Positions 2,906 to 28,845 of a stretch of DNA of 64,000 bases are shown piece by piece. The stretch is taken from positions 372,001 to 436,000 of the IMG/VR virus record IMGVR_UViG_3300037297_000066; one strand, written 5' to 3'. The position numbers and the translations under genes were made by a program. A model generated the notes under the pieces. That model was not told where the DNA came from and searched no databases. It worked only from the letters and a program-made list of their open reading frames with translations. Each line of letters begins with the position of its first letter. The first letter of the stretch is position 1.

Positions 2906-3799
2906 ATGTCAGTCGCATTCTACAGAGGGCAACAGCTGGGTTGTGAAGACCTGAACATCTACCTGGAGAACGCCTCTGGGACTCCTACCAATGCGGCCGA
3001 GATCTGGTACTCCCTTCACGATGTGACCACGGGGCAAGAGGTGTTGTTGGGGGTTCCTCGTCGATCTCCTGTCAACCCTTCCGTGGGGCACTACTACGCT
3101 AGTGTGATCATCCCTCTTGATGCGAACATTGGGAACTACCGGGTGAGGTGGTTCTTCCGGGAAACGGTGGGGGGTCCCATTCACGAAGTGGTCCAGGAAT
3201 TCTCGGTCATCGACAAGGCAACGTGTCCTACCACTTCCTACACGGATTGTGAGACGGACATGATTCGTAGGTTGAGGATTCTGCTCCGAGACAACAATCC
3301 TGACCGAAACTACCATTTCAGACCCCCTACCCACGAAGCCACGATCAACCAGTACAACCAGGTCTTCGGATTCATTTGGGAGGATGAGGAGCTTCAGGAG
3401 TACCTGGCTAGGGGCATGGACATGATCATTGCTGCCCCGCCCAGGACTCCCTTCGCTTCCTGTGATCAGCTGGTGCAGTGTCGCCCTGAGTGGAGGACTC
3501 TCCTACTCAATGGGGCTATGATCCATGCTCTCTTGGCCTTGCAGATCAACTGGATTGCTGACGAATTCGACTACAGCATCGGGGGCGTGAGTCTGACCAT
3601 CGACAAGTCGAGCAAGTACGAGAGCGCCTACAACAGTGTCAAAGACATGTTCAATGACCAGTTGGAAAAGGCCAAAAGCACGGTCAAGATCGTTCGAGGA
3701 CTGCAGCAGCCTCGCTACGGTATCGGAATTCGCTCGTCTTTCGGCCCTTACACAGGTCGGGGTGTGTTGAGTCCTCGAAAGTTTGTAGGTTTCGGTTGA
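2906..3799 (+). CDS. Putative head-tail adaptor (neck protein 1) with N-terminal Ig-like domain
   Basis: Helical connector-like core (IRRLRILLRD...WEDEELQEYL...YSIGGVSL) and position upstream of terminator and sheath. Confidence 0.55.
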   Translation: MSVAFYRGQQLGCEDLNIYLENASGTPTNAAEIWYSLHDVTTGQEVLLGVPRRSPVNPSVGHYYASVIIPLDANIGNYRVRWFFRETVGGPIHEVVQEFSVIDKATCPTTSYTDCETDMIRRLRILLRDNNPDRNYHFRPPTHEATINQYNQVFGFIWEDEELQEYLARGMDMIIAAPPRTPFASCDQLVQCRPEWRTLLLNGAMIHALLALQINWIADEFDYSIGGVSLTIDKSSKYESAYNSVKDMFNDQLEKAKSTVKIVRGLQQPRYGIGIRSSFGPYTGRGVLSPRKFVGFG

Positions 3800-3831: not shown

Positions 3832-4167
3832 ATGCCCGATGAGTCCAAGAAGAAACTGACTGTCAAAGATCCTGTTCCTAAGGAAGTGCTGGTTGTGTTG
3901 GAGCAGCTGGCTAAGGCTCGGGGGTCCTTGGCTGACCAGCTACTGGAGATGGAGCAGCGGAGGATCACTTTTTTGGCAGCTGCCAAAAGGGTTGAAGACC
4001 AGCGGAAAGCAGTTTTCGAGGAGATCTTGACTTCCCGAGGGCTGGCTCCCGGGACCCCTGTTAACATCTCCAGCTCGACTGGTGAGATCACTCTGACGAG
4101 CCCTCCTGAGGGAGGTCATCCAGAGGAAACGTCTTCGGAGGAAACGCCTTCGGAGAAAACGCGCTGA
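3832..4167 (+). CDS. Hypothetical coiled-coil protein
   Basis: 111 aa with heptad-like centre and acidic tail. Confidence 0.5.
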   Translation: MPDESKKKLTVKDPVPKEVLVVLEQLAKARGSLADQLLEMEQRRITFLAAAKRVEDQRKAVFEEILTSRGLAPGTPVNISSSTGEITLTSPPEGGHPEETSSEETPSEKTR

Positions 4168-4205
4168 GTGAGCTTTCCTTTTTTGGATTCCCTTGAGGGG
4201 AATCC

Positions 4206-5582
4206 ATGCCCTACGCTACTCAGCGAGACAGAGATCCGCACCAGCTGGAAATTGAGAGCTCCCCTTACCCGGTCTCTCCGTTGAATTTGTCCATGACTTC
4301 TGGCTACGAGCCGGGGGTCATCAATTTGACGTGGGATGACGCGGCCCAACTGTTTCAGAATTCTCGGTTTCAGATCATCGGGGTCAACGTTTGGAGGTCT
4401 TTCGACAGCGAGTTCGGTCCTTACGATCGGGTCACGACCTTGCCGGTGGGATCTAATTTCTGGCAGGACCGTACAGACAACGTGCTGATTCCAGCTGAGG
4501 ATGTTTCGGATTCGTTCATCCTCAGAGGAGTTAACTCGACCGGATCGGACTACGGTAGGTACGTATTTCAGACCCAGTATCCTATCGTGAAGGCAGGTTC
4601 CCAGGCGATACCGGCAAACAGTCCTGATGATGTGTTGGTGATGGTGGATGGGGTCCAGGCTCGGGTAAAGCGAGTTGATGGGTTCGCCAAAGAAGTCGAG
4701 CTGGATACCACCAAATACTACAACACCGAGAAGCAGAACCAGGATACCCCTGTCTATCCGGGGGACAACAGCGTGGTCACCTGTGCCTATCGGTACAACC
4801 GAACGCTTCTGAAGACAGACCTAGCACAAAGGGTCTTCTACAGAGTTACCACGGTAGGTCTTCCTGAGGCTTCTGATCTGTCGGCCGCTTGTTGTGAGGA
4901 TCTTCGGGAGACGCCTTTGGAGCGGGCTCCTGTGACCAGCACCTCAGAGATTGAGAAGCTGGACTACATCTGGAGGGAAGGTATTCGACGCAATCGTTGG
5001 ATTCTGTTCCAGGGGGGCGAGCGAGTGAAGGTCTTCATCAAGAAGCATGTAGGGCCTATTTGCCCATGCCGAGGTCCTCACTACGAGAGTTTTCATCAGC
5101 CCAAGAATGATTGCGAGCTGTGTTTTGGGGCGGGTATTTTGGGAGGGTATGAAGGCCCCTACGATATCATCATTGCTCCTGACGATGCTGAGCGTAGGAT
5201 TGCTCAACGGGACGTTGGTCGAACCGTGGAACATACCTACGAGGTCTGGACGGGTCCTTCCCCTCTCCTAAGCCAGAGAGACTTCTTGGTTAAGATCAAC
5301 GGGGAGCGCTACTCAATTGGAGCCGTACGGTTTCCGTCCAATCGAGGAATGGTGTTGCAGCAGCATTTCAATATCAGCCGTTTGGACGAACAGGACATTC
5401 GTTACAGGGTCCGGGTAACGGCTCCTTGTGGGGTGTCTGCCAACGTGGCGGGAGTTGGTCGAGCTCTTCCTGGCATACCTCCTGGCAGTAATGCGTCTGT
5501 CCCCCTCACTGAGAAGTGCAACATTCCTAATGAGCGTGAGATCAGAGGCCGCACTGTGACCTGGAAGAACATCACGTTCTGA
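4206..5582 (+). CDS. Putative head-closure protein (neck 2) with FN3-like N-terminus and CxC...CxxC Zn site
   Basis: FN3-like INLTWD/GVNVWRS/FYRVTTV; C-terminal GERVKVF...CPC...CELCFGAG...DFLVKINGERYSI beta-barrel pattern; synteny. Confidence 0.55.
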   Translation: MPYATQRDRDPHQLEIESSPYPVSPLNLSMTSGYEPGVINLTWDDAAQLFQNSRFQIIGVNVWRSFDSEFGPYDRVTTLPVGSNFWQDRTDNVLIPAEDVSDSFILRGVNSTGSDYGRYVFQTQYPIVKAGSQAIPANSPDDVLVMVDGVQARVKRVDGFAKEVELDTTKYYNTEKQNQDTPVYPGDNSVVTCAYRYNRTLLKTDLAQRVFYRVTTVGLPEASDLSAACCEDLRETPLERAPVTSTSEIEKLDYIWREGIRRNRWILFQGGERVKVFIKKHVGPICPCRGPHYESFHQPKNDCELCFGAGILGGYEGPYDIIIAPDDAERRIAQRDVGRTVEHTYEVWTGPSPLLSQRDFLVKINGERYSIGAVRFPSNRGMVLQQHFNISRLDEQDIRYRVRVTAPCGVSANVAGVGRALPGIPPGSNASVPLTEKCNIPNEREIRGRTVTWKNITF

Positions 5583-5588
5583 TTACCT

Positions 5589-6101
5589 ATGCGGCCTCCT
5601 AAAGTCAAAGTTGGCCGAGTCAACCTCAAGCCTTTGCTCCCTCCCGGGAGTCTGGAGACATTTGATGCTCAGAAGGTCCTTCGGTCTATTTCCAGGGAGG
5701 TGGTGAAGCAGCTCAGAGACAAAATCCTTCAGGAGCCTTTCTCGGACCGGGCCAAAGTAGCGTTGAGCAAGGCCATAGGTGTCACGGTGGGGCCCCGGAG
5801 CATCACTATCACAGCCAAGCACCCGGCCTTCAAGCCTCTACTGGAGGGACGCAAAGCCAGACAGATGACCTGGTTGACCAAGGCTAAGCGCCCCATTCCC
5901 ATCATCACAGAGGACGGTGAGCTGATCTTTCGTTCGGCTACTCCTCGATCGATGCAGAGGGGCAGTTGGTATCATCCTGGAAGGTCTCCCACGACTGTCA
6001 TTGAGCGTGCCCGAAAGGAGGCTCGAAAGAGCGTAAAGAAGAGAATAGTCAAGGCTTTAGCTAGCCACGTACGTAAGACGTACAAGAAGGGATCCAGATG
6101 A
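5589..6101 (+). CDS. Basic neck/tail-completion-like protein
   Basis: Very Lys/Arg-rich, with LEGRK...WYHPG; lies between neck genes and terminator. Confidence 0.45.
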   Translation: MRPPKVKVGRVNLKPLLPPGSLETFDAQKVLRSISREVVKQLRDKILQEPFSDRAKVALSKAIGVTVGPRSITITAKHPAFKPLLEGRKARQMTWLTKAKRPIPIITEDGELIFRSATPRSMQRGSWYHPGRSPTTVIERARKEARKSVKKRIVKALASHVRKTYKKGSR

Positions 6102-6102
6102 A

Positions 6103-6654
6103 ATGAGTGGTGGTATGGTTGTTTTGGGCAACGTCACGGGGACTCACTTGATAGAGGATATTCAGGTGTCTGTGCCTTATCAGGTGGCTGTGACGCTCAC
6201 ACAAGAAGACGTTGTAAGGTCTCGTGACTTGTGGGTTGCTCTTCAGCAGAGGTTCATAGTCAAGCTCCGAGATTTTCGTCAGGTACCGAATCCTCCTAGA
6301 TCGAATAATGCAACCTCGGCAGATTCTTCAGATCTGTTGAGACTGCAAGAGGAGAATCGGAAGCTTCAATCCGAGCTGAGGCAGTCGAATCAGCGGACCG
6401 ATGGTCTCGAATACAAGCTGGATGCCATCCTAGCGGCCCTAGGAAAGCTTTCTACGGTATCCCCTAGGGGAGAGACCGCTCCCGTTGAAAAGCCTCTCAG
6501 TGAGGCTGTGGGGGGTGACACGCCCATGTTCCTTCCGGAGTTTTCAGGGACTGAGTCGGAGGCTCGTATCAAGGTCAAAACTCAGCAGGAGGAGAGTGGC
6601 AGGGTACAGGAGGCGGCCGCTCTGCTGAGGAGGCTTCGCCAGCAAGAGAAGTGA
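6103..6654 (+). CDS. Coiled-coil protein with C-terminal amphipathic helix; candidate actin adaptor
   Basis: Coiled coil LQEENRKLQSEL...LDAILAAL, a linker, then terminal VQEAAALLRRLRQ. Confidence 0.5.
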   Translation: MSGGMVVLGNVTGTHLIEDIQVSVPYQVAVTLTQEDVVRSRDLWVALQQRFIVKLRDFRQVPNPPRSNNATSADSSDLLRLQEENRKLQSELRQSNQRTDGLEYKLDAILAALGKLSTVSPRGETAPVEKPLSEAVGGDTPMFLPEFSGTESEARIKVKTQQEESGRVQEAAALLRRLRQQEK

Positions 6655-6689
6655 TTCTTTTGATAGCGTTGGAATGACAGAGGTACGTT

Positions 6690-7382
6690 ATGGATCCCAA
6701 ATGGAAGGCTGTTTCCGTCCCTACCAGCAAGACGGCTTGTTCCTGTGACTCTGGAAAAGCTAAATGGCCTTCCAGTTTGGAGGCAGTGTGGCAGAATCCC
6801 ACTGCTTACGACGCTTTGGAGGACGGCCCTTCCTACATGCCCACGAAGACAGCCAGTACAACGGATCGGGCGGCTGTAGCCCGAATGGTTCAGGCCAATA
6901 CGTACGCTGGGCAAAAGTTGGCTGACGAGGTGGGGGGAACCAGGTTAGTATCTCTGCTGACGGTCATGAAGGCTTTGTACCTGATCCACCAGACTCATCA
7001 CTGGAGGACCAACGGGGCGTCCTACTATGCGGACCATTTGTTGTTCCAGCGGATCTACGAAGAGTCTCTGGAGTACATCGATGGGATGGCAGAGCGGGCT
7101 ATAGGGACGTCAAACAACCCTTGGGTGATCTGTCCTATGAAGTTGGCCAAAGGTCAGCTCAATGTCGTACACTTCTTCTGTGAGGGCAATTCTCAACCGA
7201 GCCCTGAGCAAATGGTCAACATCAGCCTCAAAGCGGAGCTGGCTTTCTTGGCTTTTCTGAAGCAGGTTGTAGAGGCTATGAGGCAAGAGGGAAGCTCGAC
7301 GGATGGCGTTGAGGACCTGATTCAGGGAACCGCCAGTAAGCATGAAGAGTTCGTTTACCTGCTGCAGCAGCGGTCCAGGTAA
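6690..7382 (+). CDS. dps: Dps/ferritin-like protein with N-terminal extension
   Basis: HQTHHW...G..YYADHLLFQRIYEE....IDGMAER matches the Dps ferroxidase signature. Confidence 0.75.
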   Translation: MDPKWKAVSVPTSKTACSCDSGKAKWPSSLEAVWQNPTAYDALEDGPSYMPTKTASTTDRAAVARMVQANTYAGQKLADEVGGTRLVSLLTVMKALYLIHQTHHWRTNGASYYADHLLFQRIYEESLEYIDGMAERAIGTSNNPWVICPMKLAKGQLNVVHFFCEGNSQPSPEQMVNISLKAELAFLAFLKQVVEAMRQEGSSTDGVEDLIQGTASKHEEFVYLLQQRSR

Positions 7383-7417
7383 AATCCAAATCCAGAATAC
7401 ATCAGACGAGGATACAG

Positions 7418-8428
7418 ATGAGCAAGAAAGAAGAAGGGCTTACTCTTGGGGTAGGTCTAGACATCGGGACCATGAACCTTGTAGGGGCCCGGGAGGTGGA
7501 AGGCAAGACCGTCTTCACACAGGTACGGGACGCCTTTCTGGACCTTGATCCGGAAGCGAAACGATCTCTCAAGATGTCGGGAGTGAACTTTCTGGAGAGC
7601 AACGGGTCCTTGGTGGTGGTTGGGGACAGTGCCTTGACCATGGCCAACCTTTTCAAGAGGGAGGCTCGTCGTCCTTTGAGTCGAGGGGTGATCTCGGCTG
7701 GGGAACTGGATGCTCAAGAGATCTTGAACGTCTTGTTGCTTGAAGTGGTGGAGCAGGCCCGGGAAGAGGGGGAGCACTGCTTCTACTCAGTTCCTGCGCC
7801 GCCTCTTGATGATCCAGGTCAAGACATCATTTTCCACACTGAGATCTTTCGTAAGATCATCAGGGGGCACAAGTACACGGCGCATCCAGCCAACGAGGCG
7901 ATGGCCATCATCTTCAGCCAGTGCGTTGAGGAGCAGTTCTCGGGTTTGGCGGTGAGTTTCGGGGCCGGGATGTGCAACGTGGCCTTGGCCTACAAGGCTG
8001 CTTCTGGAATGGAATTTTCCTTGGCTCGGGGAGGAGACTGGGTGGATTCTCAGTCGGCCCGAGCGGTGGGCAAGACTGCTAGTCAGATGTGTGCCATCAA
8101 GGAAAAGGGAGTGAACCTGGCTCAACCTCAAGGTAGAGAACAGGAGGCTCTGGCTCTCTACATTCGCTCTTTGATCAACTACTGTCTCCAGAACATCGTT
8201 GCTCAGTTCAAGAAGGTTCGAAACGATGTGTCGTTGCCTGATCCGATCCCCTTTATCGTTTCGGGAGGATCTTCGATGGCCGGCGGGTTCTTGGAGTTGT
8301 TCAAGGATGAGTTCCAGCAGGTCAAAGGGTTCCCCATCGAAATCAGTGAGATTCGAGCAGCCGCCGATCCCATGACAGCCGTGGCCGAGGGGTTGTTGGT
8401 GCTCGCCAAGCAGGAACACGAAGAGTAG
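7418..8428 (+). CDS. Actin-fold ATPase, volactin/salactin-like
   Basis: Phosphate-1 GLDIGTMN, connect NEAMA, phosphate-2 VSFGAGMCN, ARGGDWVD, adenosine VSGGSS, connect-2 DPMTAVAEG. Confidence 0.9.
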   Translation: MSKKEEGLTLGVGLDIGTMNLVGAREVEGKTVFTQVRDAFLDLDPEAKRSLKMSGVNFLESNGSLVVVGDSALTMANLFKREARRPLSRGVISAGELDAQEILNVLLLEVVEQAREEGEHCFYSVPAPPLDDPGQDIIFHTEIFRKIIRGHKYTAHPANEAMAIIFSQCVEEQFSGLAVSFGAGMCNVALAYKAASGMEFSLARGGDWVDSQSARAVGKTASQMCAIKEKGVNLAQPQGREQEALALYIRSLINYCLQNIVAQFKKVRNDVSLPDPIPFIVSGGSSMAGGFLELFKDEFQQVKGFPIEISEIRAAADPMTAVAEGLLVLAKQEHEE

Positions 8429-8429
8429 C

Positions 8430-9605
8430 GTGTACTACTTTCTCACCAACTCCCTTAGGAACCGTTTGATTCTGGAGCTGCAGGATTCGTTTTCGAAGCA
8501 TGCTCTCTACAAAAAGATCGTTCCTAACATCCAGAACAAGTACGCCTTCAAAGAGCGGCCTCAGTTTGGGGTAGTGGTCAAGGGAGCCAGCGGAAACAAA
8601 ATCCAGCTCTCGGCGGACAACTTCATTGGGGAAGTACTGAGCCATGTCATGCTGGCGTATGTGGGGGAACATCAGTTTCCCTTGGAGTGGGTGAGAGAGG
8701 ACCTGAATAGAGTTAGGGCAGCAGGAGGTTTCCCTTCTCCTCCGGGGATCTACTATATCGAGGTTCTTCAGGCTCCAACCAATCCGACAGAGCCTGGGTT
8801 TTTCGCTATCGACCCTCTTTACACGCAGCCTGATGAAGCGGTTCTGGTTTTCCAGTCGGGAATTGAGAAAGAGGCCCAGCTTCAGAACGTACCCGTTCAG
8901 GACACTGTGCGGATCTGGGAGAACAACAAGCGGCTTCTCATCGAGGGAACGGACTACATCGTCAATTATGAGACGGGGGCGGTGGCTGTCTTGCAGTCGT
9001 TCCCTCCTGGGACTACTTGGATTGCTCAATACCGTTATGCTGGGGAGTCCCAAGGTCCTATTCCCTTCTACTGGAACAGGGCGGACTTCGAGAGCATTCC
9101 GGGGGTGGTACTGGCTTTTGGAAAGAGAGCTGTTGAGGGGGATACGGTGGCTGTGGTTGTCTACCAGGATAGGGTAGGCACAGCCAAGGCTTATGGAGGG
9201 CAATTCGAAGCCTCTTTTGATTTGGATGTTATGGCTCGTGATACCGAGCAGGTGGGGGAAATCGCCGACATGATCTTCATGTACCTCATGGCGGAGAAGC
9301 GTCCGATTCTGAGTGAAGAAGGTCTAGAGATCATGGACGTCTCTATGGGGGGTGAGGCTGAAGAAGTGATGGATGAGAGTGGAGACAACTACTCCTATAC
9401 CGTTTCCATGTCGGTACAGATCCAGTCGGTGTGGGAAATTCATATTCCGCAACCTCTCACCATCAGCAGAGCTACTCCTGTGACAGCTGCGGGGGATTCC
9501 GATCCTTCTCAACCTTCAGGACTTGTGGCCAGGGCGGACAAGCTGTTTTTCCAGACCACCCCCATTCTGGCCAACAGAAATCCAGATTACGAACGCATCG
9601 GATGA
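8430..9605 (+). CDS. Putative tail terminator/completion protein with inserted beta domain
   Basis: GTG start; C-terminal SFDLDVMARD...IADMI...YTVSMSVQIQSVW resembles terminator folds; lies just upstream of the sheath. Confidence 0.55.
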   Translation: MYYFLTNSLRNRLILELQDSFSKHALYKKIVPNIQNKYAFKERPQFGVVVKGASGNKIQLSADNFIGEVLSHVMLAYVGEHQFPLEWVREDLNRVRAAGGFPSPPGIYYIEVLQAPTNPTEPGFFAIDPLYTQPDEAVLVFQSGIEKEAQLQNVPVQDTVRIWENNKRLLIEGTDYIVNYETGAVAVLQSFPPGTTWIAQYRYAGESQGPIPFYWNRADFESIPGVVLAFGKRAVEGDTVAVVVYQDRVGTAKAYGGQFEASFDLDVMARDTEQVGEIADMIFMYLMAEKRPILSEEGLEIMDVSMGGEAEEVMDESGDNYSYTVSMSVQIQSVWEIHIPQPLTISRATPVTAAGDSDPSQPSGLVARADKLFFQTTPILANRNPDYERIG

Positions 9606-9608
9606 ACC

Positions 9609-10043
9609 ATGCCCAAGTACACTTTCGAGTGTGATTCCTGCAACGTTAGGTTCACTCGGACTCTCAAAATGGGAGAACACCTGACCTGCGCCTGTCCCAA
9701 GTGCAGAGAGCAGGTTCCTAGGTTTTGGGATGGACAGGGGTTTTCCTTCGATTTTGCCGAGGGAGGGAAGGCCCCGGCAAACAGTGGGGTGACCAAGCAC
9801 GATTATCCGACGGCGGACCAGGCTGTGGGAAGGTCCGCCGACAAACGGTGGGCAGAGTACCGAGAGCGGGAAAAGGTGAAAGAAAAGGTTCGGGAGAGGG
9901 GGGGTTCCAGAGCCTTGAATCGGACAGACTCCCCGGAAATAAACGGAAATCGTAGCTATATCCAGTACACAGCCATAGGAGAAAAGGAGCTCCAGGGACG
10001 TCGGGAAGTGGTGGGTAAGCTTAAGCAGCTAGAGCCTCGATAA
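9609..10043 (+). CDS. FmdB-like zinc-ribbon protein
   Basis: MPKYTFECDSC...F...CPKC signature. Confidence 0.75.
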   Translation: MPKYTFECDSCNVRFTRTLKMGEHLTCACPKCREQVPRFWDGQGFSFDFAEGGKAPANSGVTKHDYPTADQAVGRSADKRWAEYREREKVKEKVRERGGSRALNRTDSPEINGNRSYIQYTAIGEKELQGRREVVGKLKQLEPR

Positions 10044-10085
10044 ACTATCGTTTGACTCTACTAATGTAGAGCGGTTCTGCTGCTC

Positions 10086-10135
10086 AGATTCAGATGTAGA
10101 CGTAGATCAAAAGCCCTAGATCCAGATTAAAATTG
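10086..10135 (+). repeat. 6-nt periodic AGAYNN repeat in the sheath leader
   Basis: AGATTC AGATGT AGACGT AGATCA AAAGCC ct AGATCC AGATTA AAATTG. Confidence 0.7.
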
Positions 10136-10163
10136 GCATTTTTCCTGCGAATAGGAGTGTCCA

Positions 10164-13100
10164 GTGTCTCTAGGACCATTGACGACCTACGTTCCCCCTG
10201 GCATCTACACCCGCACCCTGACCGAGGTCAACGCAGCCAACTTGGTGGCTGGCCTTCGGATCCCCGTTGTCATTGGCGTGGGACAGGAACAGCTGGAGCA
10301 ATCCGACCTGGAAATGGTCAGGGGTAGCTCGGCTACTCTGGACCAGCAAATCGTCAGCGAGGACGTCTCACAGTCTTTCGTGGTGGACAACTCCAATCCT
10401 CTGGTTCCCGTTCTGGGACCCACGGATGGGACCTTCACGACGGTTCGAGTTCGCAACTACCCCATTGTGGATGGACAGGGCTTTGGCCGAGTGACCAACG
10501 ACGTTCGTTCGGTCAGTGCCACGGTCAACGGGACGCCTGTGGCCATCGGAAGTGTGCAGGGTACCAACGGATACATCACCTTCCAGGTACCGCCTCAGGT
10601 GGGGGACGACGTTCGGGTCACCTATTACTTCCACCGAGGAGACACTGCTTTCACGGATACCGTGTCTGACCAGGTGACTCCGACCACAGCGGACCTGACC
10701 ACTCCTGCAGTGGCCAACTTCGCTTTCACGACAGGTATCAGCGACACCTTCGTGATCGGAGTGGATGGTACTGACAGTACCGTTGTCTTTACCGAGGGCA
10801 TTCACACAGCTCTAGCCGTCAAGACCATGATCGACGCCGCTCTGATCACTGGATTGACTACGGCAGTCTTCACGGACAACGAAGGCAATGACCACGTCAC
10901 TCTGACGGCGGCTCAGAAGCTGGTGATTGGTACGGGCAACGCTAATGGAGCTTTGGGCTTCACGGCGGGGGCTTCCACCAGTCGAAACGTCAACTTCCGG
11001 GTGTTCCAGCGTCCTATCGTGGATGGAACGGATGGAGGGATCACCACCACAGACCCAAGCAAGGTTGTGGTGCTAGTGAACAACTCTCAGGTCATTCCCA
11101 CTGCTGTGGATGGCACCAACGGAATCGTGACTTTGCCGATGGCCCCTGCGGCTGGAAGCACCGTCACAATTCAGTACTGGGCCAACACGTGGCAGGACAC
11201 CTTCGACTACTTGCCCAACACGCTGGTTTCGACGGTGACCCGTTGCGGGTTCTCGCCTGGTCGTTCGGACTACATCCAGAACCAGGATTTCGTCATCTCC
11301 AATCCGAGCGAGGATGTCTCGGTGGTCCACTGGGGCTCCAGTGTGGCTGTTTCCTCAGTCCTGAGAACGGCTGGGGCAACCGTCTTCGACGAGACGCAGA
11401 TCCTGGCCTCTTTGGTCGATGACAAGATGTACTTGGCGGAATGCACCCGGGTGGTAGACACCACGGTCGTTCCTGCCGAGACATCTCCCAATGAGTTCCT
11501 GCTCCCGGCTATTCCGACCACAGGCAACGGTCGAGACACGCCGCTTGGGAGCACACTCTACAACACGGTCACCAATGGCCGGATGAACCTGAACACGGAT
11601 CGTCCCGATCTCATCACGGTCTACACTGGTCGAGATCTTCGGGATGCGTTGGGTCGGGATCCCATCGATGTGATCGAAGTGGATGCCCTCAATCGCCAGA
11701 TCACGCTCAAGCAGGCCGTTCCTCCAGATCACAACGCCTACGCCACGTTCTGGTATAGCCGTCTGTCTGACGACACCTACGTGCTGACCAACAAGGTGGC
11801 TGGAGCCGTTGGTACAGGAGAGTACGAGGTATTCAGTTCCGTTCAGAACAACAACCTCTTGCAGGTTCTGTTCGGAAGCAAGACGGCTACCGAAGTCATT
11901 CAGTGGCCTCGGGGAGTGGAGAGTATTCCAGATGCCTTCCACACGGGTACGGGAACTGGGTCTCCAGTGGCCGAGACTGTCACTGTTACCTTCGCTTCTG
12001 AGGCAGCCAAGAATGCTGCTTACACTAACGAAGGGGCCGCTCCCTACGAGTTCTTCGCTGGAACTTCGGATCAGTGGGTGACCGTGCTCAACGGCGTGAC
12101 CTACCCTACGGACCTGGATACAGCCGTGGTTGGTCGAATCGTTGGGACTCGGGTGGCTGTGGATGGTTCCGACCAGATCACCTTCACCACGGGCGTCAAC
12201 GACGTTCTGAACCTGACCATCGACGGTACGGACTACACTGTGACTTTCTCAGCAGGCGCTACTGCTGTGGGGCCAGTGGGAACGCCTGGGACGGTCCTTG
12301 CTCAGATCGCTGCGGTCATTCCGACCACACCTGAACTGGTTCAGTTGGGTCCCTCGGGATCTGATGTGATGTTCATCATCCCCTCGTCTTCGACGCCTGC
12401 GGCTTTGCCTGGTGGCTTCGACCATGTCTCTGCGGTCAGCGTCCGTCAGGGTACTGCCGAGACGACTTTGGGCTTTGTGCCTTTCCAGTCGGCCTCGGGG
12501 ACTCCCACGGCAACCAACAAGCCGGCCACCCTTTTGGGTACGGAGACCGGGGACTTCATCATCACTCTTGGCGTGAACGACGAGTTCAAGTTCCGGGTCG
12601 ATGGATTGGAGTACACAGTCACTCTGACGGCGGGCACTCGTACGGCGACCCAGGTGGTTTCGGACATCACGGGTGTGGTTGCTGGGGTGGCTTCTGTGGG
12701 TACCTTGGCCAACTTGGACAAGGTTCGACTCACCAGTACCACCACCAACTCTGGCTCTAGGATCGTCATTCTCGATGGCTCAGCCAACGATACGCTGGGC
12801 TTCACCGAAGATGATTCGGCGAGCTACACGCCTGTCACGGCTCAGGAAGTGGTCAACGAGCTTCTGGCCACGGCCAGTTTCCAGACCGACGGGGTGGCTT
12901 ACGTTTCCACCATCAATGGAAGCCAGTACGTAACCATTGAGTCCAGTGATGTGGGAGCCACTACCCCATCGGCATCGAGCATCGCTTTCACGTCGGTTTC
13001 CAACTCGGCATTCAACACTACCACGGGTACAGGCATCGAGCCTGGCACCAGTGGAGACAATGGTGAGGACGCTCGGGACATTTACACCGTTGCCACGGAC

Positions 13101-14423
13101 CGAACAGACGGCCTGGGTTCTGGTGGAACCGGTGTTCCGGGGCAGACCTACACGGATGCCAAGACGGGCCTGAGATTCACGGTTCTGGAGTCTGCCACGG
13201 GGTCCTACACTCCTGGAGGCACCTTTACTCTGACTGTCAGCCCGACCTGGAAAGTCCATCCTTCGATTCCAAGCCTGCAGTTGGGCGGTCTCGAAGTCAT
13301 CGTCACGGACACGGTGGGTGTGGGAGTGGACGACACGGCCAATGTTCAGGCGTTCAATCCTGGTGGTAGCGAGCCAGCTGTCGGAGACTTCTACTACATC
13401 AGCTATCAGTACCTGAAGCAGGATTTCTCGACTCGGCTGTTCCAAACCTTCAAGGTCATCGAGGCCAACTTTGGTCGTTTGAGTCCTGAAAACAGGGTCA
13501 CCTTGGCTAGCTTCCTGGCCATTCTGAATGGTGCGGTCCTCGTGGGTATCAAACAGGTGCTCAAGGAGTCCAACACCAACCAGGCCAGTGACGCTTCGTT
13601 CTTGGCGGCCCTTCAGGAGCTGACCATTCCGCTGCCTGGCAACGTCAAGCCGGATGTATTGGTGCCTCTCACGACCTCTACGACGGTCTATGGGGCTCTG
13701 ATGCAGCACTGTGAGGTTCAGTCCAACATTCGCAACCAAGCGGAAAGGATGGGCTTCATTGGGTTCGCTTCGGGAACCTCTCCGATCACAGCCCAAACGA
13801 TTGCCAAGAGCTTGCTCAGCAACCGTATCGTGGCTGTGTACCCGGACTCGGCAGTCATTACTGTGACCAATGAACTGGGTGAGAGCAGCGAATCTCTGGT
13901 TGACGGCACCTTCCTGGCTTCAGCTTTGGCTGGTGCGATCGTCAGCCCGGCTGTGGACGTGGCGACTCCGTACACGAGGCGACAACTTGTCGGAATCGAC
14001 CGGCTTCCTCGGGTTTTGGACCCGGTGGAGGCAAGCCAGACAGCAGTGGCTGGTATCACGGTCCTGGAGGATCTCGCAACAACTGTTCGAGTCAAGCAGG
14101 GTCTGACCACGGACATGTCCACGATTCTGACTCGCCTTCCCACGGTGACTCAGATTGCGGACTTCGTGCAGCAACAGTCCCGAGCTACCTTGGATGCCTT
14201 CGTGGGCACCAAGTTCCTCAGCCAAAGGACGAACGAAGTCGAAGTCTCGATGACTTCTCTGTTCAACCAGATGTTGCAGGCAGAGATTGTTGGAGGCTTC
14301 ACGGGAATCAACGCAGAGGTGGATCCCAACGATCCGACCATCATGCGGTTCGAGGCGTTCTACGCTCCGATCTTCCCGCTTTTGTACATCGTCCTCACAT
14401 TCAACCTAAGAGCTAACGTCTAG
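10164..14423 (+). CDS. Contractile tail sheath protein with large multi-domain insertions
   Basis: N-terminal YVPPGIY; C-terminal sheath core (ERMGFIG...GITVLE...GLTTD...IADFV...FVGTKF...YAPIFPLLYIVLTF). GTG start. Confidence 0.9.
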   Translation: MSLGPLTTYVPPGIYTRTLTEVNAANLVAGLRIPVVIGVGQEQLEQSDLEMVRGSSATLDQQIVSEDVSQSFVVDNSNPLVPVLGPTDGTFTTVRVRNYPIVDGQGFGRVTNDVRSVSATVNGTPVAIGSVQGTNGYITFQVPPQVGDDVRVTYYFHRGDTAFTDTVSDQVTPTTADLTTPAVANFAFTTGISDTFVIGVDGTDSTVVFTEGIHTALAVKTMIDAALITGLTTAVFTDNEGNDHVTLTAAQKLVIGTGNANGALGFTAGASTSRNVNFRVFQRPIVDGTDGGITTTDPSKVVVLVNNSQVIPTAVDGTNGIVTLPMAPAAGSTVTIQYWANTWQDTFDYLPNTLVSTVTRCGFSPGRSDYIQNQDFVISNPSEDVSVVHWGSSVAVSSVLRTAGATVFDETQILASLVDDKMYLAECTRVVDTTVVPAETSPNEFLLPAIPTTGNGRDTPLGSTLYNTVTNGRMNLNTDRPDLITVYTGRDLRDALGRDPIDVIEVDALNRQITLKQAVPPDHNAYATFWYSRLSDDTYVLTNKVAGAVGTGEYEVFSSVQNNNLLQVLFGSKTATEVIQWPRGVESIPDAFHTGTGTGSPVAETVTVTFASEAAKNAAYTNEGAAPYEFFAGTSDQWVTVLNGVTYPTDLDTAVVGRIVGTRVAVDGSDQITFTTGVNDVLNLTIDGTDYTVTFSAGATAVGPVGTPGTVLAQIAAVIPTTPELVQLGPSGSDVMFIIPSSSTPAALPGGFDHVSAVSVRQGTAETTLGFVPFQSASGTPTATNKPATLLGTETGDFIITLGVNDEFKFRVDGLEYTVTLTAGTRTATQVVSDITGVVAGVASVGTLANLDKVRLTSTTTNSGSRIVILDGSANDTLGFTEDDSASYTPVTAQEVVNELLATASFQTDGVAYVSTINGSQYVTIESSDVGATTPSASSIAFTSVSNSAFNTTTGTGIEPGTSGDNGEDARDIYTVATDRTDGLGSGGTGVPGQTYTDAKTGLRFTVLESATGSYTPGGTFTLTVSPTWKVHPSIPSLQLGGLEVIVTDTVGVGVDDTANVQAFNPGGSEPAVGDFYYISYQYLKQDFSTRLFQTFKVIEANFGRLSPENRVTLASFLAILNGAVLVGIKQVLKESNTNQASDASFLAALQELTIPLPGNVKPDVLVPLTTSTTVYGALMQHCEVQSNIRNQAERMGFIGFASGTSPITAQTIAKSLLSNRIVAVYPDSAVITVTNELGESSESLVDGTFLASALAGAIVSPAVDVATPYTRRQLVGIDRLPRVLDPVEASQTAVAGITVLEDLATTVRVKQGLTTDMSTILTRLPTVTQIADFVQQQSRATLDAFVGTKFLSQRTNEVEVSMTSLFNQMLQAEIVGGFTGINAEVDPNDPTIMRFEAFYAPIFPLLYIVLTFNLRANV

Positions 14424-14595: not shown

Positions 14596-17500
14596 ATGGA
14601 GATGGACGCCTCTACCGATTACGACTTCCGTGTTCAGGCAGCTCAGGACGAGGACATCAGCGAGCTAGAGGCCGCTGAGTACATCGTTTTCAACTTGGCT
14701 CTGGATACCTATTTCCGGTACATCGAAGAGGTCACAGGGGAGGAGCCCCCAGAGGATGACGAGAATACTCTGGATGAGGCCCCCGAGGGTGACACCACGA
14801 AGTTGGATTCTCTGGCTTCGGATGGCATTCGACTCTTGAAGCGAGTGGATAGCCGATTCCAAGAAGATGCGGTGTCCATGCTGGATACCAACCTGCCCTC
14901 TGAGACCCACAAGAAGATGCTTCAGAGGGCGTTTCGGCGCCCAGCCAGGTCAAGGGACGCTATCTCTCGTCGAGCTCTCTTGATGCGAACTGTGCTCTCC
15001 AGAGGAGGGCACAAGACCGTCAAAGCGGTCTTCCACAAAACTCGACCCCTTCGTGCTGTCAAAGATGCCTTGGCAGATGCCATGATGGAGGATGCAGGGC
15101 CGGCTTTGCAGAGATTTGCAGCGGTACCGATTCGGAATCCTCGGATCAAGGCTTGGATCAAGGCAGCAGCTTCCGTTACCAGGGAAAGGGATCAGCCCAA
15201 TGCTGCTCCTCTCAACCCCGTGGAGGTGGCCTCTTCGGTAGGTGCCGATCATGCGGAGGCACTTCGGAAGGACACTGTTGACGAAACAGGTCTCCAAGGG
15301 GCGGAAGAGCAAGCCGTTGCTGGGGATGAAAGGGAGAACAGGATTTCCGACATCGAGTCGGAGGCTGCCGAAGCTGCCGCTGAGGTTCTGGCTGATGCCG
15401 GTGAGCCCGATGAGGTTTTGACTCGTAGTGAGGTCATTGGCATTGCTACCGCTGCAGCGGTGGCAGCTTCTACCGACCCTACCGACCCTACCAACATCCC
15501 AGAGCCTCTTAAGCGTCTAGATGACGAGCAGAGAGCAGCGGCCATGACTGACGGCAAGGTCTTGGTGGCGGCAGGGGCCGGGTCTGGAAAGAGCTGGACT
15601 TTGGTGGCCCGGGTCGAGCATCTCATCAAGGATCGAGGCGTCAATCCTGCCAGGTGTCTAGTCACTTCCTTCAACAAGAAGGCCGCTCTAGAGCTCGACT
15701 ACAAGATCGGCAATGTCATTGGTGGGGACATGGCTGACGCTATGTCTATTGGGACCCTTCACGGGTTGTTCCGGCAGTTCATCGACAAGTATGGGACTCA
15801 GGAAGAGCGTATCGCTGTGGGGGTTGATAGGAAAGGTCCCAACGGGTTCGTGAAGGGAGGCGATTCTGTTGCTTCGGCTGTCAACCGGGTGTGGCGCAAG
15901 TGCTATGCCACCCAGAAGGCTGATGGGACGTGGAAGGATGCTGACGCTCCTAGGGTCAAGGATGGAATGCGTGCCAAGACCCAGTGGGCTGGAAACAACG
16001 TGACTCCTGCCCAGGCCATAGAGAAAGCGGCCACGCCAGAAGAGGCTCAGCTGGCTCAGTGGTATGAGTGGTACATGGGTTTCAAAGGGGACCTGGGGAA
16101 GGATTGGGAACCCCCTTGTGGTCGAAAGCTCAGGGAGTGGGAAGGGTTCCTAGCAAAGAAGCGTCTTGGGGGAAGGATTCGTCTTGGAGACTTCGACGAC
16201 ATGTTGGGTATCTTCAAAGACATCCTCAAGAGACAACCGGAAGTGAAGGCCACTGTCCAGGCGGCCTTCGACCACATTTTGGTTGACGAGTGTCAGGATC
16301 TTAATGAGACCCAGAATGAAATTATCATGATGATGTCCGAACACATCACTGATGGTTCTGATGGAAAGTCTCTTTGGATGGTGGGCGACGATAAGCAGTG
16401 CGTGGGTGTAGACACGCCTGTCCAGGTTTCAGCAACCGAGACTGTGCCCGCGGGGGAGCTTCAAGCGGGTGCCACTGTGTTGGCTTACCGCAATGGCAAA
16501 TTGCGTCCCCAGAAGGTGTTGCACGCCAAACATTCCGATTGGCGCACTGGGTACAAGGTCACTACGGAAAGCGGTAAGACGCTTACTATGTCTCCCAACC
16601 ACAAGATTTGGGCACAAGGTCCCGTTCTTGAGGAAAGGCAAGTAGCCGTCTACCTTATGTATCGTCAGGACAAGGGCTTCCGGGTTGGGATCACCAACAA
16701 GTGCCACGACGAGGATTACTACAACTCGTTTGGGGGTCGAGCCTTCATGGAGAAGGCCGAGCGTATGTGGGTTCTTACCGTATGCCAAGACCGTGAAGAA
16801 GCCTTGTTGAAGGAGGCTTCCTACTCTTTGGAATACGGTGTGCCTACGGCAGTGTTCGAGGGGGCCAGCAGGGGTATCAACCAGGATCGGTTGGATGCCT
16901 TGTTTGAGACTTTTGGACATAACGGTAGGAAACTGCTGGCTGAAAAGACTCTGGGTTTTGACCTTCCCCACTGGGTTAGCCAATCTTACACGAAGCATGG
17001 GCGTCTCCGTAGAACCGTGCAGATGACGGCTCATGGATCAAAGGGAAGCCAGGTTGCTTTGGAGTGGTCTGGGGATGACCTGGACGGGAAGTTGGAAGGC
17101 ATCCAGTTCTCCAAGCAAGCTAATGGGCGTCGCCGTCTCCGCAAATGGTTCACCAATTATCGAGAGGCTCTTGAGTTCGCTGAGCAGGTGGCAGAAAGGA
17201 CTGGAGCTGCGTTGTCTCGGCGTTTGTCTACTCCTGAAGGGCCTGTGCGGTTGCTCACTGCTTCTGGGTTGTTCTCTGGAATGCAAGTGGTTGTTAGGGA
17301 CGATGAGGATCCCGAAGCCGTTGCTTTGGAAACCATCGTGTCGGTGGAACCCGTTTCCGAGACGGCCTTCGTGGATCTGGACGTGGAAGATGCTTCCAAC
17401 TTCGTCGGAGGCGGTATTCTTTCCCACAACAGTATCTACGCCTTCCGTGGAGCTCGTCCTGATCTGTTCACCGCCCTGGATGGTAAGGAAGGCTGGAAGA

Positions 17501-28100: not shown

Positions 28101-28845
28101 AGGTACTCTTGGCCAGGATGAGATGGCTCGTAGGTTAGGTGGGGGGATGAGAGGTTCTTTGGCTGCCGCTGTGGAGGCTGCCAGGGCGAAGATTCGACCC
28201 GGTGGGTCTGGGGGTACTCTGGAAGGCAAGGCTGAGGAGGTACCCGCTACGGCTAAGGGTCAAGGTCAGCTGCATGAAGACATGAGCCGGATGGAGAAAC
28301 GTCTCTCTACAAAGGGCATCCGGTACGACAAGTCCTTCCTGACCGGAGACTATGGTTCTGAGATCGAGAAGAGAGTTCTCGATGCGATGCGTGTGGCCCT
28401 CGTGGAATTCGCTATCTACAAGGACGCTGACAAGGAAGCCTTGGTTAGGTCTCTAGGAAAGGCTGATCCTAAGACCTTCGGAAAGGACCTTCTACAAGCA
28501 GCCCAGACAACCAAGAATCCTGCTGATTTCGCTAAATCTCTCACTACGGGAACTATGGGGGAGGGTACGCCTACACAGACCGGGGGGTATGTTGTGGGAC
28601 GGAACCCGGATGGCACAGCCCGTGTTCTTCGTCCACCGGCGGGCGAGTCTCCGGCCTTCGTGGGTCCTGGGGAAAGCATCATGTCCCGAGGGGCGATGGC
28701 AGCCATGGCTGGAGGGGGTCGAGGTGGGTTGCCTCCTATTCAGGTCAGCGTCAATGGTGTAGGAGGTCGGGAACTAGCTCGGATCATCGAAGCCAAGGTG
28801 GCTGATGGTGTGTACGAGTACAAGCGCAGGGAAGGGTTCTCTTGA
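25144..28845 (+). CDS. Tape measure protein
   Basis: 1233 aa, helical and Ala/Gly/Lys/Met-rich, with an N-terminal coiled coil and a C-terminal GGYV...GPGESI motif. Confidence 0.85.
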   Translation: MPTPEEVLTIGLDLDITGALKDLAAFQRKMSAQMGAVTDTVDKLSKANERMAKKAAKGTREWEESVEDLEESVDKLEKVLANLERRAKKASGEEKRRLEQEIATLRRVAEEKKKGEKKEKGKRGVGEAEAAAKGAVAGALAGLAGREAKDIGRDIFGGMRGGMQSLFQKDLKGSIAGGGKLLSGIMEGTFKVGGGLFKRGGKVFGDQAGSFLMRKSQQQMAKGGMKGKMAGGGLAGVGAALKGLGGMFKAVGPLLNTLSKIGPLVGMLSSALMGVVQLLIDLDSRAKDFNRSILQTAGNAEFLANNFYDSELAAGDMEDTLKGVRDAAYSLKNIDWGITADEHKAVYNTLNQEGVAFADVSKWAKASKRSVEDFSFELVKVSVGISRNLGVPLQEINQMQAEMITELGSSLDETKLAFAQMTRAATESGIAGNKFFAMIRGVSQDLALYNTRMGSASKLLKEVGKAMNPRAAQQFMQFAMQGLKSMDQDARMRLNLLTGGKGKGIVTKDLERKGKLLVRDIRESFVQGSEALAASWSEDKIQEALSKGGIERAQLLRDVGKMRGGGALVGAAEEMKIDRSAVKKGEYGVAAAMRNLSAGGSLEMMRAGIMKFSGAKSLSEGIGSIGQDKMAQMLGISEEQVRGMAKLEGHLMRQRELLKADLESSDEKVREDAKQRLEAAGITEEQLKSNQVGMGALMETLSDKDRKQAEEDSETQLDVSKRQADMQTSMLQKFEILVNFLMNQLYNVLLDIWEAVESIMDPLGSEKEKRKAKRAILETKDPEMIKAMRDMGENLDAYALRGKASDVYGKALTEKVQTDEGRAQVLKVAQEQLTHEDIMAAGAMGGVSKAKMDKLRSKLYKKVTATEAGMAPAVSVGGPGTMAPAMAMAGATKVTVPIEGVDFGQAMRDAGFSPDEISHLLEKGIWAAAPSRAVSFATRVGKPEAKKEAKVQAEEQAKVQQPSAQQQASAKTAAPPGQPAAAASGVGTLGQDEMARRLGGGMRGSLAAAVEAARAKIRPGGSGGTLEGKAEEVPATAKGQGQLHEDMSRMEKRLSTKGIRYDKSFLTGDYGSEIEKRVLDAMRVALVEFAIYKDADKEALVRSLGKADPKTFGKDLLQAAQTTKNPADFAKSLTTGTMGEGTPTQTGGYVVGRNPDGTARVLRPPAGESPAFVGPGESIMSRGAMAAMAGGGRGGLPPIQVSVNGVGGRELARIIEAKVADGVYEYKRREGFS

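Follow-up and report, generated by a model that had tools for sequence, protein, structure and literature searches.

Does a huge phage encode its own actin cytoskeleton, complete with an adaptor that links the filament to a cargo? The question is raised by a 64,000-nucleotide stretch of DNA (here called the window) that forms part of a 437-kb huge-phage contig from wetland and sediment metagenomes. A first-pass annotation, made from the sequence alone, proposed that an actin-fold ATPase at 7418 to 8428 and a coiled-coil protein at 6103 to 6654, both embedded among neck and tail genes, form a candidate cytomotive system. The two open reading frames are real and have the features that were described for them, apart from two points noted below (the character of the terminal helix and the labels given to the flanking genes). 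The interpretation attached to them is partly supported: the family assignment and the partnership of the two genes are well supported by comparative genomics, while filament formation, binding and the nature of the cargo are inferred.

A volactin-family actin in a clade of huge phages

ORFs 6103 to 6654 (183 aa), 6690 to 7382 (230 aa) and 7418 to 8428 (336 aa) lie on the + strand, 35 nt apart, in an unbroken row of + strand genes. The 7418 to 8428 protein belongs to the Pfam family Volactin (PF25216; E value 5e-69; 233.7 bits against a gathering threshold of 35), with residues 12 to 330 aligned to profile positions 3 to 321 of 321. The motifs listed in the first-pass annotation are all present (GLDIGTMN at residue 13, RRP at 84, YSVPAPPLD at 123, NEAMA at 159, SFGAGMCN at 180, and FSLARGGDWVD at 200), and the family motifs GxDxGT, RRP, SVPAxPxD, NEAxA, S[FC]GxGM.N, RGGDW.D and SGGTS fall in invariant or nearly invariant columns of the family alignment. 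The key residues are D15, G17 and T18 in phosphate 1, E160 in connect 1, S180 in the phosphate-2 SFGAG loop, the GGDW motif at 205 to 210, and G283 and G284 in the adenosine motif. A profile alignment to Escherichia coli MreB places S180 on the phosphate-2 Asp (VSFGAG against VDIGGG) and E160 on the catalytic Glu, and also aligns the GGD..D motif. The Ser had been singled out as a departure from the usual Asp, which coordinates metal in other actins. It is real, but it is a trait of the family and not an anomaly, being found in 126 of about 150 representatives.

The annotation had favored volactin or salactin over MreB, ParM or FtsA. We found support for volactin only: the protein has no hit to the Salactin family (PF25229) at an E value of ≤0.01, and even a Haloarcula volactin scores only 17.5 bits against that family's cutoff of 27.1. 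Scores for MreB_Mbl (PF06723; 18.6 bits against 27) and MamK (NF040964; 17.7 bits against 400) are below their cutoffs, and the hhalign probability of 88.6% with MreB indicates kinship only at the superfamily level. PHROGs gave no family for the actin, and a PDB sequence search returned nothing meaningful. The AlphaFold2 model is confident (pLDDT, 93.7; pTM, 0.91), and its best Foldseek matches are the filament-forming actins MamK, MreB and BeeR (TMq, 0.67 to 0.74), at about 17% identity. The top 30 matches comprised MamK, MreB, BeeR, actin, crenactin and FtsA, whereas the nonpolymerizing EutJ and PilM ranked 31st and 39th; no Pfam hit to nonpolymerizing ASKHA ATPases was found. No N- or C-terminal membrane-targeting amphipathic helix is visible in the sequence.

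The actin is a core gene of a widespread clade of uncultured phages with genomes of 200 to 500 kb. At least 1,573 homologues were found, those on contigs bearing the conserved gene block (which reach 512 kb) being 54 to 71% identical, and the actin is the second most conserved protein of the block, with a median identity of 63%. In 68 of 68 loci that were seeded by the neighboring tail-terminator-like gene, the actin lies directly upstream of that gene. A haloarchaeal virus was ruled out as the source by an SLT lysozyme domain, by the wetland and sediment origins of the contigs, and by their huge-phage character; the host is presumably bacterial and bears peptidoglycan. A megablast search of positions 5500 to 10100 against GenBank phages found no match. 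The nearest cellular relatives, at 39 to 43% identity, are chromosomal genes of Planctomycetota. In our tree, which did not include ParM or FtsA, the phage clade and the Planctomycetota clade are separate (each supported at 98), and the phage sequences are not nested among those of Planctomycetota.

The companion protein and the conserved gene block

The AlphaFold2 model of the 6103 to 6654 protein shows the architecture that had been proposed for it: a β-rich N domain (residues 1 to 57; pLDDT, 94 to 97), a long, predicted coiled-coil helix (75 to 116), a disordered linker (118 to 164) and a C-terminal helix (165 to 182). The terminal helix had been called amphipathic, but its hydrophobic moment is not above that of shuffled sequences, and it is best described as a basic helix with a short A..LL..L stripe. 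The family alignment has invariant residues D19, S40, D42, L43, P141, P145 and L175. PHROGs gave no family for this protein, and fold searches with the model gave no significant match (best E value, 0.39 in PDB and 0.0075 in BFVD).

Conservation of the gene pair in related phages and beyond was one of the checks proposed in advance. The 6103 to 6654 gene is upstream of the actin gene in 61 of 61 clade loci with enough flanking sequence. Its C-terminal module (6508 to 6651, + strand), which consists of the GGDxPxF[IL]P motif at residues 136 to 147, the xARIxV stretch and the AAxLRxLRK helix, is the only part shared with the partners of cellular volactin-family genes. A profile of the last 40 residues, built from phage sequences only, detected ORFs adjacent to the actin gene at three Planctomycetota loci (L152, 1.2e-6; L145, 1.5e-4; L117, 8e-4) and in other phage lineages (L067, 4.9e-5; L073 to L075, 1.7e-3). 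After iteration, there were 72 hits among 10,359 ORFs. Of these, 68 lie less than 400 nt from the actin gene on the same strand, 2 lie in the gene block with a Dps-like gene in between, and 2 lie directly upstream of a volactin gene that had been missing from our table; there was no hit elsewhere. Hits within Planctomycetota are related to each other, and the independent support comes from the few cross-lineage hits of the phage-only profile. The N-terminal parts differ by lineage while the tail is shared, as expected for an adaptor.

Between the adaptor candidate and the actin, positions 6690 to 7382 encode a Dps/ferritin-like protein (Pfam Ferritin, 24.6 bits against a cutoff of 24.5; phrog_3636 “DNA binding protein,” 1.3e-10; NCBIfam DpsA, 2.7e-10, below its cutoff). 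It is part of the cassette in most of the clade but not in all relatives: it was found by BLAST in 63 loci but is absent from L067, L083 and L248. In L067, L083 and LR745208, which keep the pair without the Dps-like gene, as well as in other phages and in Planctomycetota, the adaptor and actin genes are directly adjacent.

The labels “neck” and “tail terminator” for the flanking genes rest only on feature and fold leads. The 8430 to 9605 gene (+ strand; 391 aa), whose start codon adjoins the stop codon of the actin gene, encodes a tail-terminator-like protein that had a feature-based match to SP10_terminator clusters (0.92; 180 shared features). Models of a close relative resemble Phage_tail_terminator_9 and the E217_gp29 gateway protein, but no Pfam, PHROG or PDB sequence hit was obtained. 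The 4206 to 5582 gene (+; 458 aa) encodes a neck- or head-completion-like protein with a Cys cluster and a weak match to phrog_1004 “virion structural protein” (3.4e-4); the model of a close relative aligns at residues 241 to 376 (approximately) with the SPP1 head-tail adaptor, Minor_capsid_1 and the T4 neck protein. The most conserved protein of the block (2906 to 3799, +; 297 aa; median identity, 68%) is possibly a connector, given a weak match to phrog_17327 “head-tail connector” (1.5e-3). PDB searches with profiles of the 8430, 4206 and 2906 families gave nothing meaningful. The 5589 to 6101 gene (+; 170 aa), directly upstream of the adaptor, is syntenic in 61 loci and has no family hit. 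Downstream, positions 9609 to 10043 (+) encode an FmdB-type zinc-ribbon protein found in 68 loci (TIGR02605, 1.2e-9; Zn_ribbon_8, 1.8e-7), and positions 10164 to 14423 (+) encode a large protein (1,419 aa; median identity, 61%) that is probably structural. The latter shares a domain with the 4206 and 8430 proteins, as indicated by cross-hits between the family HMMs, and had only a subthreshold hit to DUF2460.

Possible roles of the pair

We postulate that the two proteins make up a virus-encoded actin cytoskeleton, a reading to which we assign a probability of about 0.5. Our analysis establishes the volactin-family membership of the actin, its intact nucleotide site, a predicted fold closest to filament-forming actins, its status as a core syntenic gene, and the constant companionship of a protein whose C-terminal module recurs beside volactin-family genes in other phages and in Planctomycetota. 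Polymerization, ATP hydrolysis, binding between the two proteins and the identity of the cargo are inferences. In this view, the actin would polymerize into dynamic cytoplasmic filaments, as reported for volactin in Haloferax, where the filaments touch the membrane by their tips (PMC10869688). The adaptor would dimerize through its coiled coil, hold the filament through its C-terminal FIP-plus-basic-helix module, as ParR holds ParM, and bind a phage-specific cargo with its N-terminal β domain. Both genes lie in one tight row between a neck-like and a tail-terminator-like gene, so they are probably made late, although this timing is inferred from gene packing alone. The cargo would then most likely be a virion assembly intermediate (filled heads or finished tails) or the site where these meet, and the system would resemble PhuZ-driven capsid trafficking but be built from actin. 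The first-pass annotation had proposed the traffic or positioning of heads, tails or DNA, by analogy with PhuZ; gene position is the only evidence for trafficking of virion parts. The Ser at phosphate 2, where other actins have a metal-coordinating Asp, and the lack of measurable amphipathicity in the terminal helix count against this reading. Position alone does not fix the cargo, because the same row holds nonstructural genes (the Dps-like gene and a UvrD helicase gene at 14596) and the actin lies in other contexts in more distant phages. In one such lineage (L071 to L078), we had suspected a portal-protease-capsid order upstream of the actin, but comparison with PHROGs showed a NUDIX hydrolase there instead (in L072).

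An alternative hypothesis, which we consider unlikely but the strongest of the rivals, is that the pair positions DNA, moving or anchoring phage genomes or a replication compartment, and that its place among neck and tail genes is incidental. Known actin-adaptor pairs of mobile elements act on DNA (ParM/ParR, AlfA/AlfB, and AlpC/AlpA of prophage CGP3 [PMC4446434]), salactin, another haloarchaeal actin, aids DNA partitioning (PMC10746226), and a Dps-like DNA-binding protein is encoded between the two genes. However, a search of positions 4000 to 10200 found only scattered two- or three-copy matches of 12 to 24 nt inside coding sequence, with no repeat array that could serve as a centromere, and the intergenic gaps are only 1 to 35 nt. 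The N domain of the adaptor is β rich, has a median net charge of 0, and matches no ribbon-helix-helix (RHH) or other DNA-binding fold, so it is not an obvious DNA binder, and the Dps-like gene is missing from L067, L083 and LR745208, which keep the pair.

Less likely still is that the phage actin remodels the host by reshaping, enlarging or stiffening the infected cell or by interfering with a volactin-type host cytoskeleton. Volactin governs shape transitions in Haloferax (PMC10869688), the virions of 400-kb phages are very large, and the nearest cellular relatives have the same kind of partner, so a phage copy could plug into a host system if the host is of that kind. The separation of the phage and Planctomycetota clades, the phage-specific N domain conserved across the clade, and the location of the genes with late structural genes and not with early takeover genes argue against this hypothesis. 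Finally, the 6103 protein could be an ordinary neck assembly or scaffolding protein linked only by synteny to an actin that acts alone or as a nonpolymerizing ATPase or chaperone, since every block gene co-occurs with the actin within the clade, coiled coils are common in morphogenesis modules, and a feature-based lead to a GPO scaffold cluster was obtained (at a low score of 0.68), but we consider this the least likely explanation. The C-terminal module recurs beside volactin-family genes in cellular chromosomes that lack the phage block altogether, and nowhere else in about 19,400 ORFs, and the best structural matches of the actin are all polymerizing actins.

Related cytoskeletal systems

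Phage-encoded cytoskeletons are known so far from tubulins (PhuZ and TubZ) and from one prophage actin (AlpC), and in the literature we searched, which was incomplete, we found no paper describing volactin-family actins in phages. If the main reading is correct, very large phages have solved intracellular logistics with actin as well, and the pair would supply a compact system for reconstitution in vitro. Among the closest known systems is volactin of Haloferax volcanii (VolA; HVO_2015), represented in our comparisons by members from Haloarcula, Halogeometricum and Natrinema. The Haloarcula pNG700 member (447 bits on the Volactin model) shares 37% identity and all motifs, including SFGAGM, with the phage protein. 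Haloarchaeal volactin genes also have an upstream neighbor that ends in a linker and a basic helix, but that neighbor is a membrane protein with a four-TM DUF7139 domain, whereas the phage partner has a predicted soluble β domain and a coiled coil. We speculate that the DUF7139 protein could be the unknown membrane anchor of volactin filament tips and that a coiled-coil neighbor would play this role in Planctomycetota, a phylum whose cell biology lacks the usual MreB and FtsZ explanations. With somewhat less confidence than in the main reading, we suggest that volactin-family actins in haloarchaea, in Planctomycetota and related phyla, and in huge phages may all work as two-gene modules, each an actin plus a lineage-specific anchor that grips the filament with a shared C-terminal linker-and-basic-helix peptide. 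In the phages, the module would organize virion assembly, making it the first actin counterpart of the PhuZ spindle and this clade the first phage clade defined in part by an actin gene.

Like ParM/ParR/parC and AlfA/AlfB, the phage system pairs an actin-like protein with a small adaptor gene whose conserved C-terminal end is presumably the filament-binding part; ParR binds ParM by its C-terminal helix. It differs in its actin family, in the absence of parC-like repeats, in the non-RHH N domain, and in gene order, since the adaptor lies upstream and, in this clade, is separated from the actin by the Dps-like gene. AlpC/AlpA of Corynebacterium glutamicum prophage CGP3 (PMC4446434) is likewise a phage-encoded actin and adaptor that support the viral cycle; AlpC belongs to another Alp lineage and acts on viral DNA replication in a small temperate prophage. 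The PhuZ spindle of nucleus-forming jumbo phages (PMC7950403, PMC8314001, PMC9067925), which organizes late infection and moves capsids, is the functional analogue of the proposed role, but it has a tubulin fold, no adaptor of this kind, and a different phage group as its source. Saltatorellin, a MamK-like, non-MreB actin homologue from the Planctomycetota-related phylum Saltatorellota, forms filaments when expressed (bioRxiv 10.1101/817700) and may belong to the same family as the cellular relatives found here. The most acidic relatives of the phage actin were suspected to be haloarchaeal, but their contig carries GGDEF/EAL and GatB genes and looks bacterial.

A volactin-family protein in a huge-phage gene row

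The first 21 kb of the window is an unbroken row of + strand genes. The genes of interest, 6103-6654 (183 aa), 6690-7382 (230 aa), and 7418-8428 (336 aa), are separated from one another by 35 nt and are preceded and followed by genes at distances of 1 to 7 nt. The 336-aa protein encoded at 7418-8428 matches the Pfam family Volactin (PF25216) from end to end (E value of 5e-69; 233.7 bits against a cutoff of 35), whereas MreB_Mbl reaches only 18.6 bits, below its cutoff, and Salactin (PF25229) is not hit. NCBIfam has no model for this protein (MamK scores 17.7 bits against 400), and searches of PHROGs and of PDB sequences with it found nothing. The observation made in the first-pass annotation holds: all of the motifs that it listed are present, at residues 13, 84, 123, 159, 180, and 200. 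It had compared the protein with haloarchaeal volactin and salactin; the volactin assignment is borne out by the profile scores, while the salactin one is not.

With a 28-sequence alignment, AlphaFold2 gave a confident model of the protein (pLDDT 93.7; pTM 0.91). Foldseek searches of the PDB with this model ranked MamK (filament form 5ljv; TMq 0.74), MreB from several species, and the BeeR filament (TMq 0.72) first, followed by actin, crenactin, and FtsA, with nonpolymerizing relatives such as EutJ and PilM appearing later; sequence identity to all of these is about 17%. A profile alignment with Escherichia coli MreB (probability 88.6%) placed S180 on the phosphate-2 Asp, E160 on the catalytic Glu, RGGDWVD on IGGDRFD, and SGGSS on TGGGA. 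The Ser remarked on in the first-pass annotation is therefore truly in the Asp position. However, it is nearly invariant across the whole family, with S in 126 of about 150 representatives, and is present in the haloarchaeal members; it is a family trait and not a defect of this gene. No terminal membrane-targeting helix is visible in the protein sequence.

The window is part of IMGVR_UViG_3300037297_000066, a 437,331-bp viral contig, and the same sequence occurs in a second sample. Public runs that hold it are wetland and marine-sediment metagenomes, and no RNA run was listed for it. The window also encodes an SLT lytic transglycosylase domain, a Baseplate_J protein, and several giant open reading frames (ORFs). 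It therefore belongs to a tailed huge phage of a peptidoglycan-bearing, presumably bacterial, host and not to a haloarchaeal virus. Only two GenBank phage records hold a relative, both of them unannotated metagenomic huge phages: LR745208 (485 kb; 50% identity) and LR756511 (595 kb; 27% identity).

Distribution and cellular relatives of the actin

A word-indexed search returned 1573 homologues, of which the best 120 are 64 to 100% identical and lie on contigs of up to 465 kb. An exhaustive search of representatives clustered at 50% identity found 1032 clusters at an E value of ≤1e-3 and 303 at ≤1e-30. In viral contigs, 85 loci were confirmed, and in about 60 to 70 of the 80 loci that were kept, the actin lies in one syntenic block, in the order 1683, 2906, 3832, 4206, 5589, 6103, 6690, 7418 (actin), 8430, 9609, 10164 (genes are named here by their start positions in the window). 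The median identity of the actin to the window's copy is 63%, which makes it the second most conserved protein of the block. As a test independent of the actin, we seeded a scan with the family of the 8430-9605 protein; in all 68 loci with at least 1.5 kb of upstream sequence, the actin gene lies directly upstream, 20 apparent misses being ORF-boundary overlaps of a few bases. The actin is thus a core gene of this clade. Some homologues in other huge phages (proteins P0121, P0125, P0136, and P0122) are interrupted by inteins with LAGLIDADG or HNH endonuclease domains at three different insertion sites (after about residues 174-217, 187, and 206), close to the phosphate-2 and GGDW motifs; interruption by inteins is typical of highly conserved proteins.

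A scan of one cellular genome per species found 561 confirmed loci. Among the best 80, apart from three probably misbinned phage contigs, nearly all are from Planctomycetota at 39 to 43% identity, including a closed 7.2-Mb chromosome, along with some from Omnitrophota and Acidobacteria. Three contigs (loci L081, L082, and L083), filed under Thermoplasmata, Betaproteobacteria, and Legionellales metagenome-assembled genomes, hold actins 49 to 58% identical to that of the window. L082 and L083 also carry phage block genes (only the 8430 homologue in L082), and L081 groups with L083 in the actin tree; these are most likely misbinned huge-phage contigs. Haloarchaeal megaplasmids of Haloarcula, Halogeometricum, and Natrinema carry members at 36 to 37% identity that score 437 to 447 bits on the Volactin model. 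Tandem or nearby paralogous volactin-family genes occur within single bacterial loci (L106, L150, L158, and L161 [7217-8770]). A bacterial protein of 1160 aa (P0170) fuses a volactin domain to Wzz/GNVR and a ParA/MinD-like (BY-kinase type) ATPase, linking the family to polysaccharide chain-length machinery.

In a quick maximum likelihood tree (LG+G4, SH-aLRT support only, MreB as a long-branched outgroup), the block-bearing phages form one clade (support 100), which lies inside a larger group of 53 rows (support 98) that also contains other viral contigs. The sister group of 49 rows (support 98) holds the Planctomycetota and Omnitrophota genes. This tree, which does not include the three haloarchaeal megaplasmid genes, resolves neither the root nor the direction of any transfer.

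The upstream partner and its C-terminal tail

The AlphaFold2 model of the 6103-6654 protein confirms the architecture described in the first-pass annotation (a globular head, a coiled coil, a linker, and a terminal helix): a beta-rich N-domain at residues 1-57 (pLDDT 94-97), a helix at 75-116, a disordered stretch at 118-164, and a helix at 165-182. In the family alignment, the N-domain (D19, S40, D42, and L43), a GGDxPxF[IL]P motif (P141 and P145), and the tail AxxLRxLRK (L175) are conserved, while the coiled coil varies in length. The N-domain has no significant fold match and carries no net charge.

The decisive result concerns the tail. A hidden Markov model (HMM) of the last 42 residues, built from phage sequences only, was searched against all 10,359 stop-to-stop ORFs of at least 60 aa in the loci that lack the block or are divergent. 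Its significant hits were all ORFs next to the actin gene, with the motif at the very C terminus; they were found in Planctomycetota (loci L152, 1.2e-6; L145, 1.5e-4; and L117, 8e-4), in a divergent block phage (L067, 4.9e-5), and in an unrelated low-GC phage lineage (L073-75, 1.7e-3). The hits obtained within Planctomycetota are homologous to each other, so the independent evidence is the handful of cross-lineage hits of the phage-only profile. After four iterations there were 72 hits, of which 68 lie within 400 nt of the actin gene on the same strand, mostly upstream, 2 lie in block loci with the Dps-like gene in between, and 2 lie directly upstream of a volactin gene that was absent from our locus table; there was no hit anywhere else among these ORFs. 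In the block clade, the same profile hits one ORF per locus in 64 loci, always upstream of the actin, and nothing else among 9,042 ORFs. In LR745208, the partner is directly adjacent to the actin.

Chromosomal volactin-family genes are widespread in Planctomycetota and also occur in Omnitrophota and Acidobacteria (loci L084-L160; for example, L136:6425-7858, upstream of the actin at 8001), each paired with a coiled-coil protein that ends in ...LESNMDNI.VKQK.GGGIAANLAKLKKLKGG. The Planctomycetota consensus is LESNMDNI.VKQK.GGGIAANLA+LKKLKGG, at the end of coiled-coil proteins of 190 to 570 aa. One subgroup (L084-L091 and L097) instead has a downstream ORF that ends in ...QLTAILSILQRR. Lineages that the profile missed have look-alike tails by eye, such as ...DLKKLKKLRVS and ...SKRKLSRLLGGK.

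The three haloarchaeal volactin genes (L167:3917-4825, L168:3791-4690, and L169:1471-2394) are each preceded by a four-TM DUF7139 protein with a long acidic linker and a conserved C-terminal helix of the form GL[LM]x[RS][LVI]RSL[FV]. The similarity of these tails to the phage profile is not statistically supported (E value of 0.5). This protein is a candidate membrane anchor for volactin filament tips, an inference that fits the published observation that volactin filaments touch the membrane by their tips (PMC10869688).

Gene context and possible roles of the pair

The 8430-9605 protein resembles tail terminator or gateway proteins by language-model features (SP10_terminator, 0.92) and by the predicted structure of a close relative. 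A relative of the 4206-5582 protein has a segment like the SPP1 head-tail adaptor and T4 neck proteins, and 2906 and 4206 have weak PHROG hits to connector and virion proteins. The "neck module" and "tail terminator" labels of the first-pass annotation are therefore plausible leads and not assignments. HMMs of the 4206-5582, 8430-9605, and 10164-14423 families cross-hit each other weakly (E values of 1e-5 to 6e-15 in related loci), suggesting a shared domain among the neck-like, terminator-like, and 1419-aa proteins. The gene between the adaptor and the actin in most of the clade, 6690-7382, encodes a Dps/ferritin-like protein that could act in DNA compaction or iron handling or could be cargo. 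It is missing in L067, L083, and LR745208, which keep the pair, and so it is not essential to the pair. In a distant low-GC phage lineage (L071-L078), the actin and its small partner lie next to a NUDIX hydrolase (L072:8889-9446) rather than in the neck/tail block. No repeat array that could act as a centromere is present within 4000-10200.

The analyses described above establish that the protein is a member of the volactin family, that its predicted fold is of the polymerizing kind, that it is a core gene product in a large huge-phage clade, and that it has a partner gene whose tail is conserved across phages and bacteria. Filament formation, binding of the tail to the filament, dimerization through the coiled coil, late expression, and the identity of the cargo are inferences from sequence, predicted structure, and gene position, with binding proposed by analogy to the established binding of ParR to ParM. 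The interpretation offered in the first-pass annotation, an actin filament and adaptor that position or traffic heads, tails, or DNA late in infection, is thus supported only in part. We assign a probability of about 0.7 to the reading of the two genes as an actin plus its adaptor; any claim about the cargo deserves less confidence and remains doubtful. We favor a role in organizing virion assembly because of the fixed position between neck-like and terminator-like genes and the uncharged, phage-specific N-domain. Alternative hypotheses are that the pair positions DNA or a compartment or that it remodels the host, and both remain possible.

Literature searches for volactin, for actin-like proteins in huge or jumbo phages, and for phage-encoded actins found the Haloferax and Halobacterium work, the study of AlpC from prophage CGP3, and the PhuZ literature but, in the library searched, no description of this phage family or of the conserved partner. 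Saltatorellin, a MamK-like filament-forming actin of Saltatorellota, may be a cellular member of the family.

Other genes in the window include a UvrD/REP-type helicase of 1472 aa (14596-19014), interrupted by an intein (Intein_splicing domain at residues 617-945), which lies directly after the structural-looking block and is present at this position in only about 10 related loci. Two giant ORFs, 38070-43925 and 53261-61006, encode proteins of 1951 and 2581 aa, the first of which has no Pfam hit. The 1233-aa protein encoded at 25144-28845 has a subthreshold Pfam hit (E value of 0.005; 17.1 bits against 27) to RdfA, the Haloferax rod-determining factor described in the same paper as volactin; this is probably coiled-coil noise, but it is a curious coincidence.
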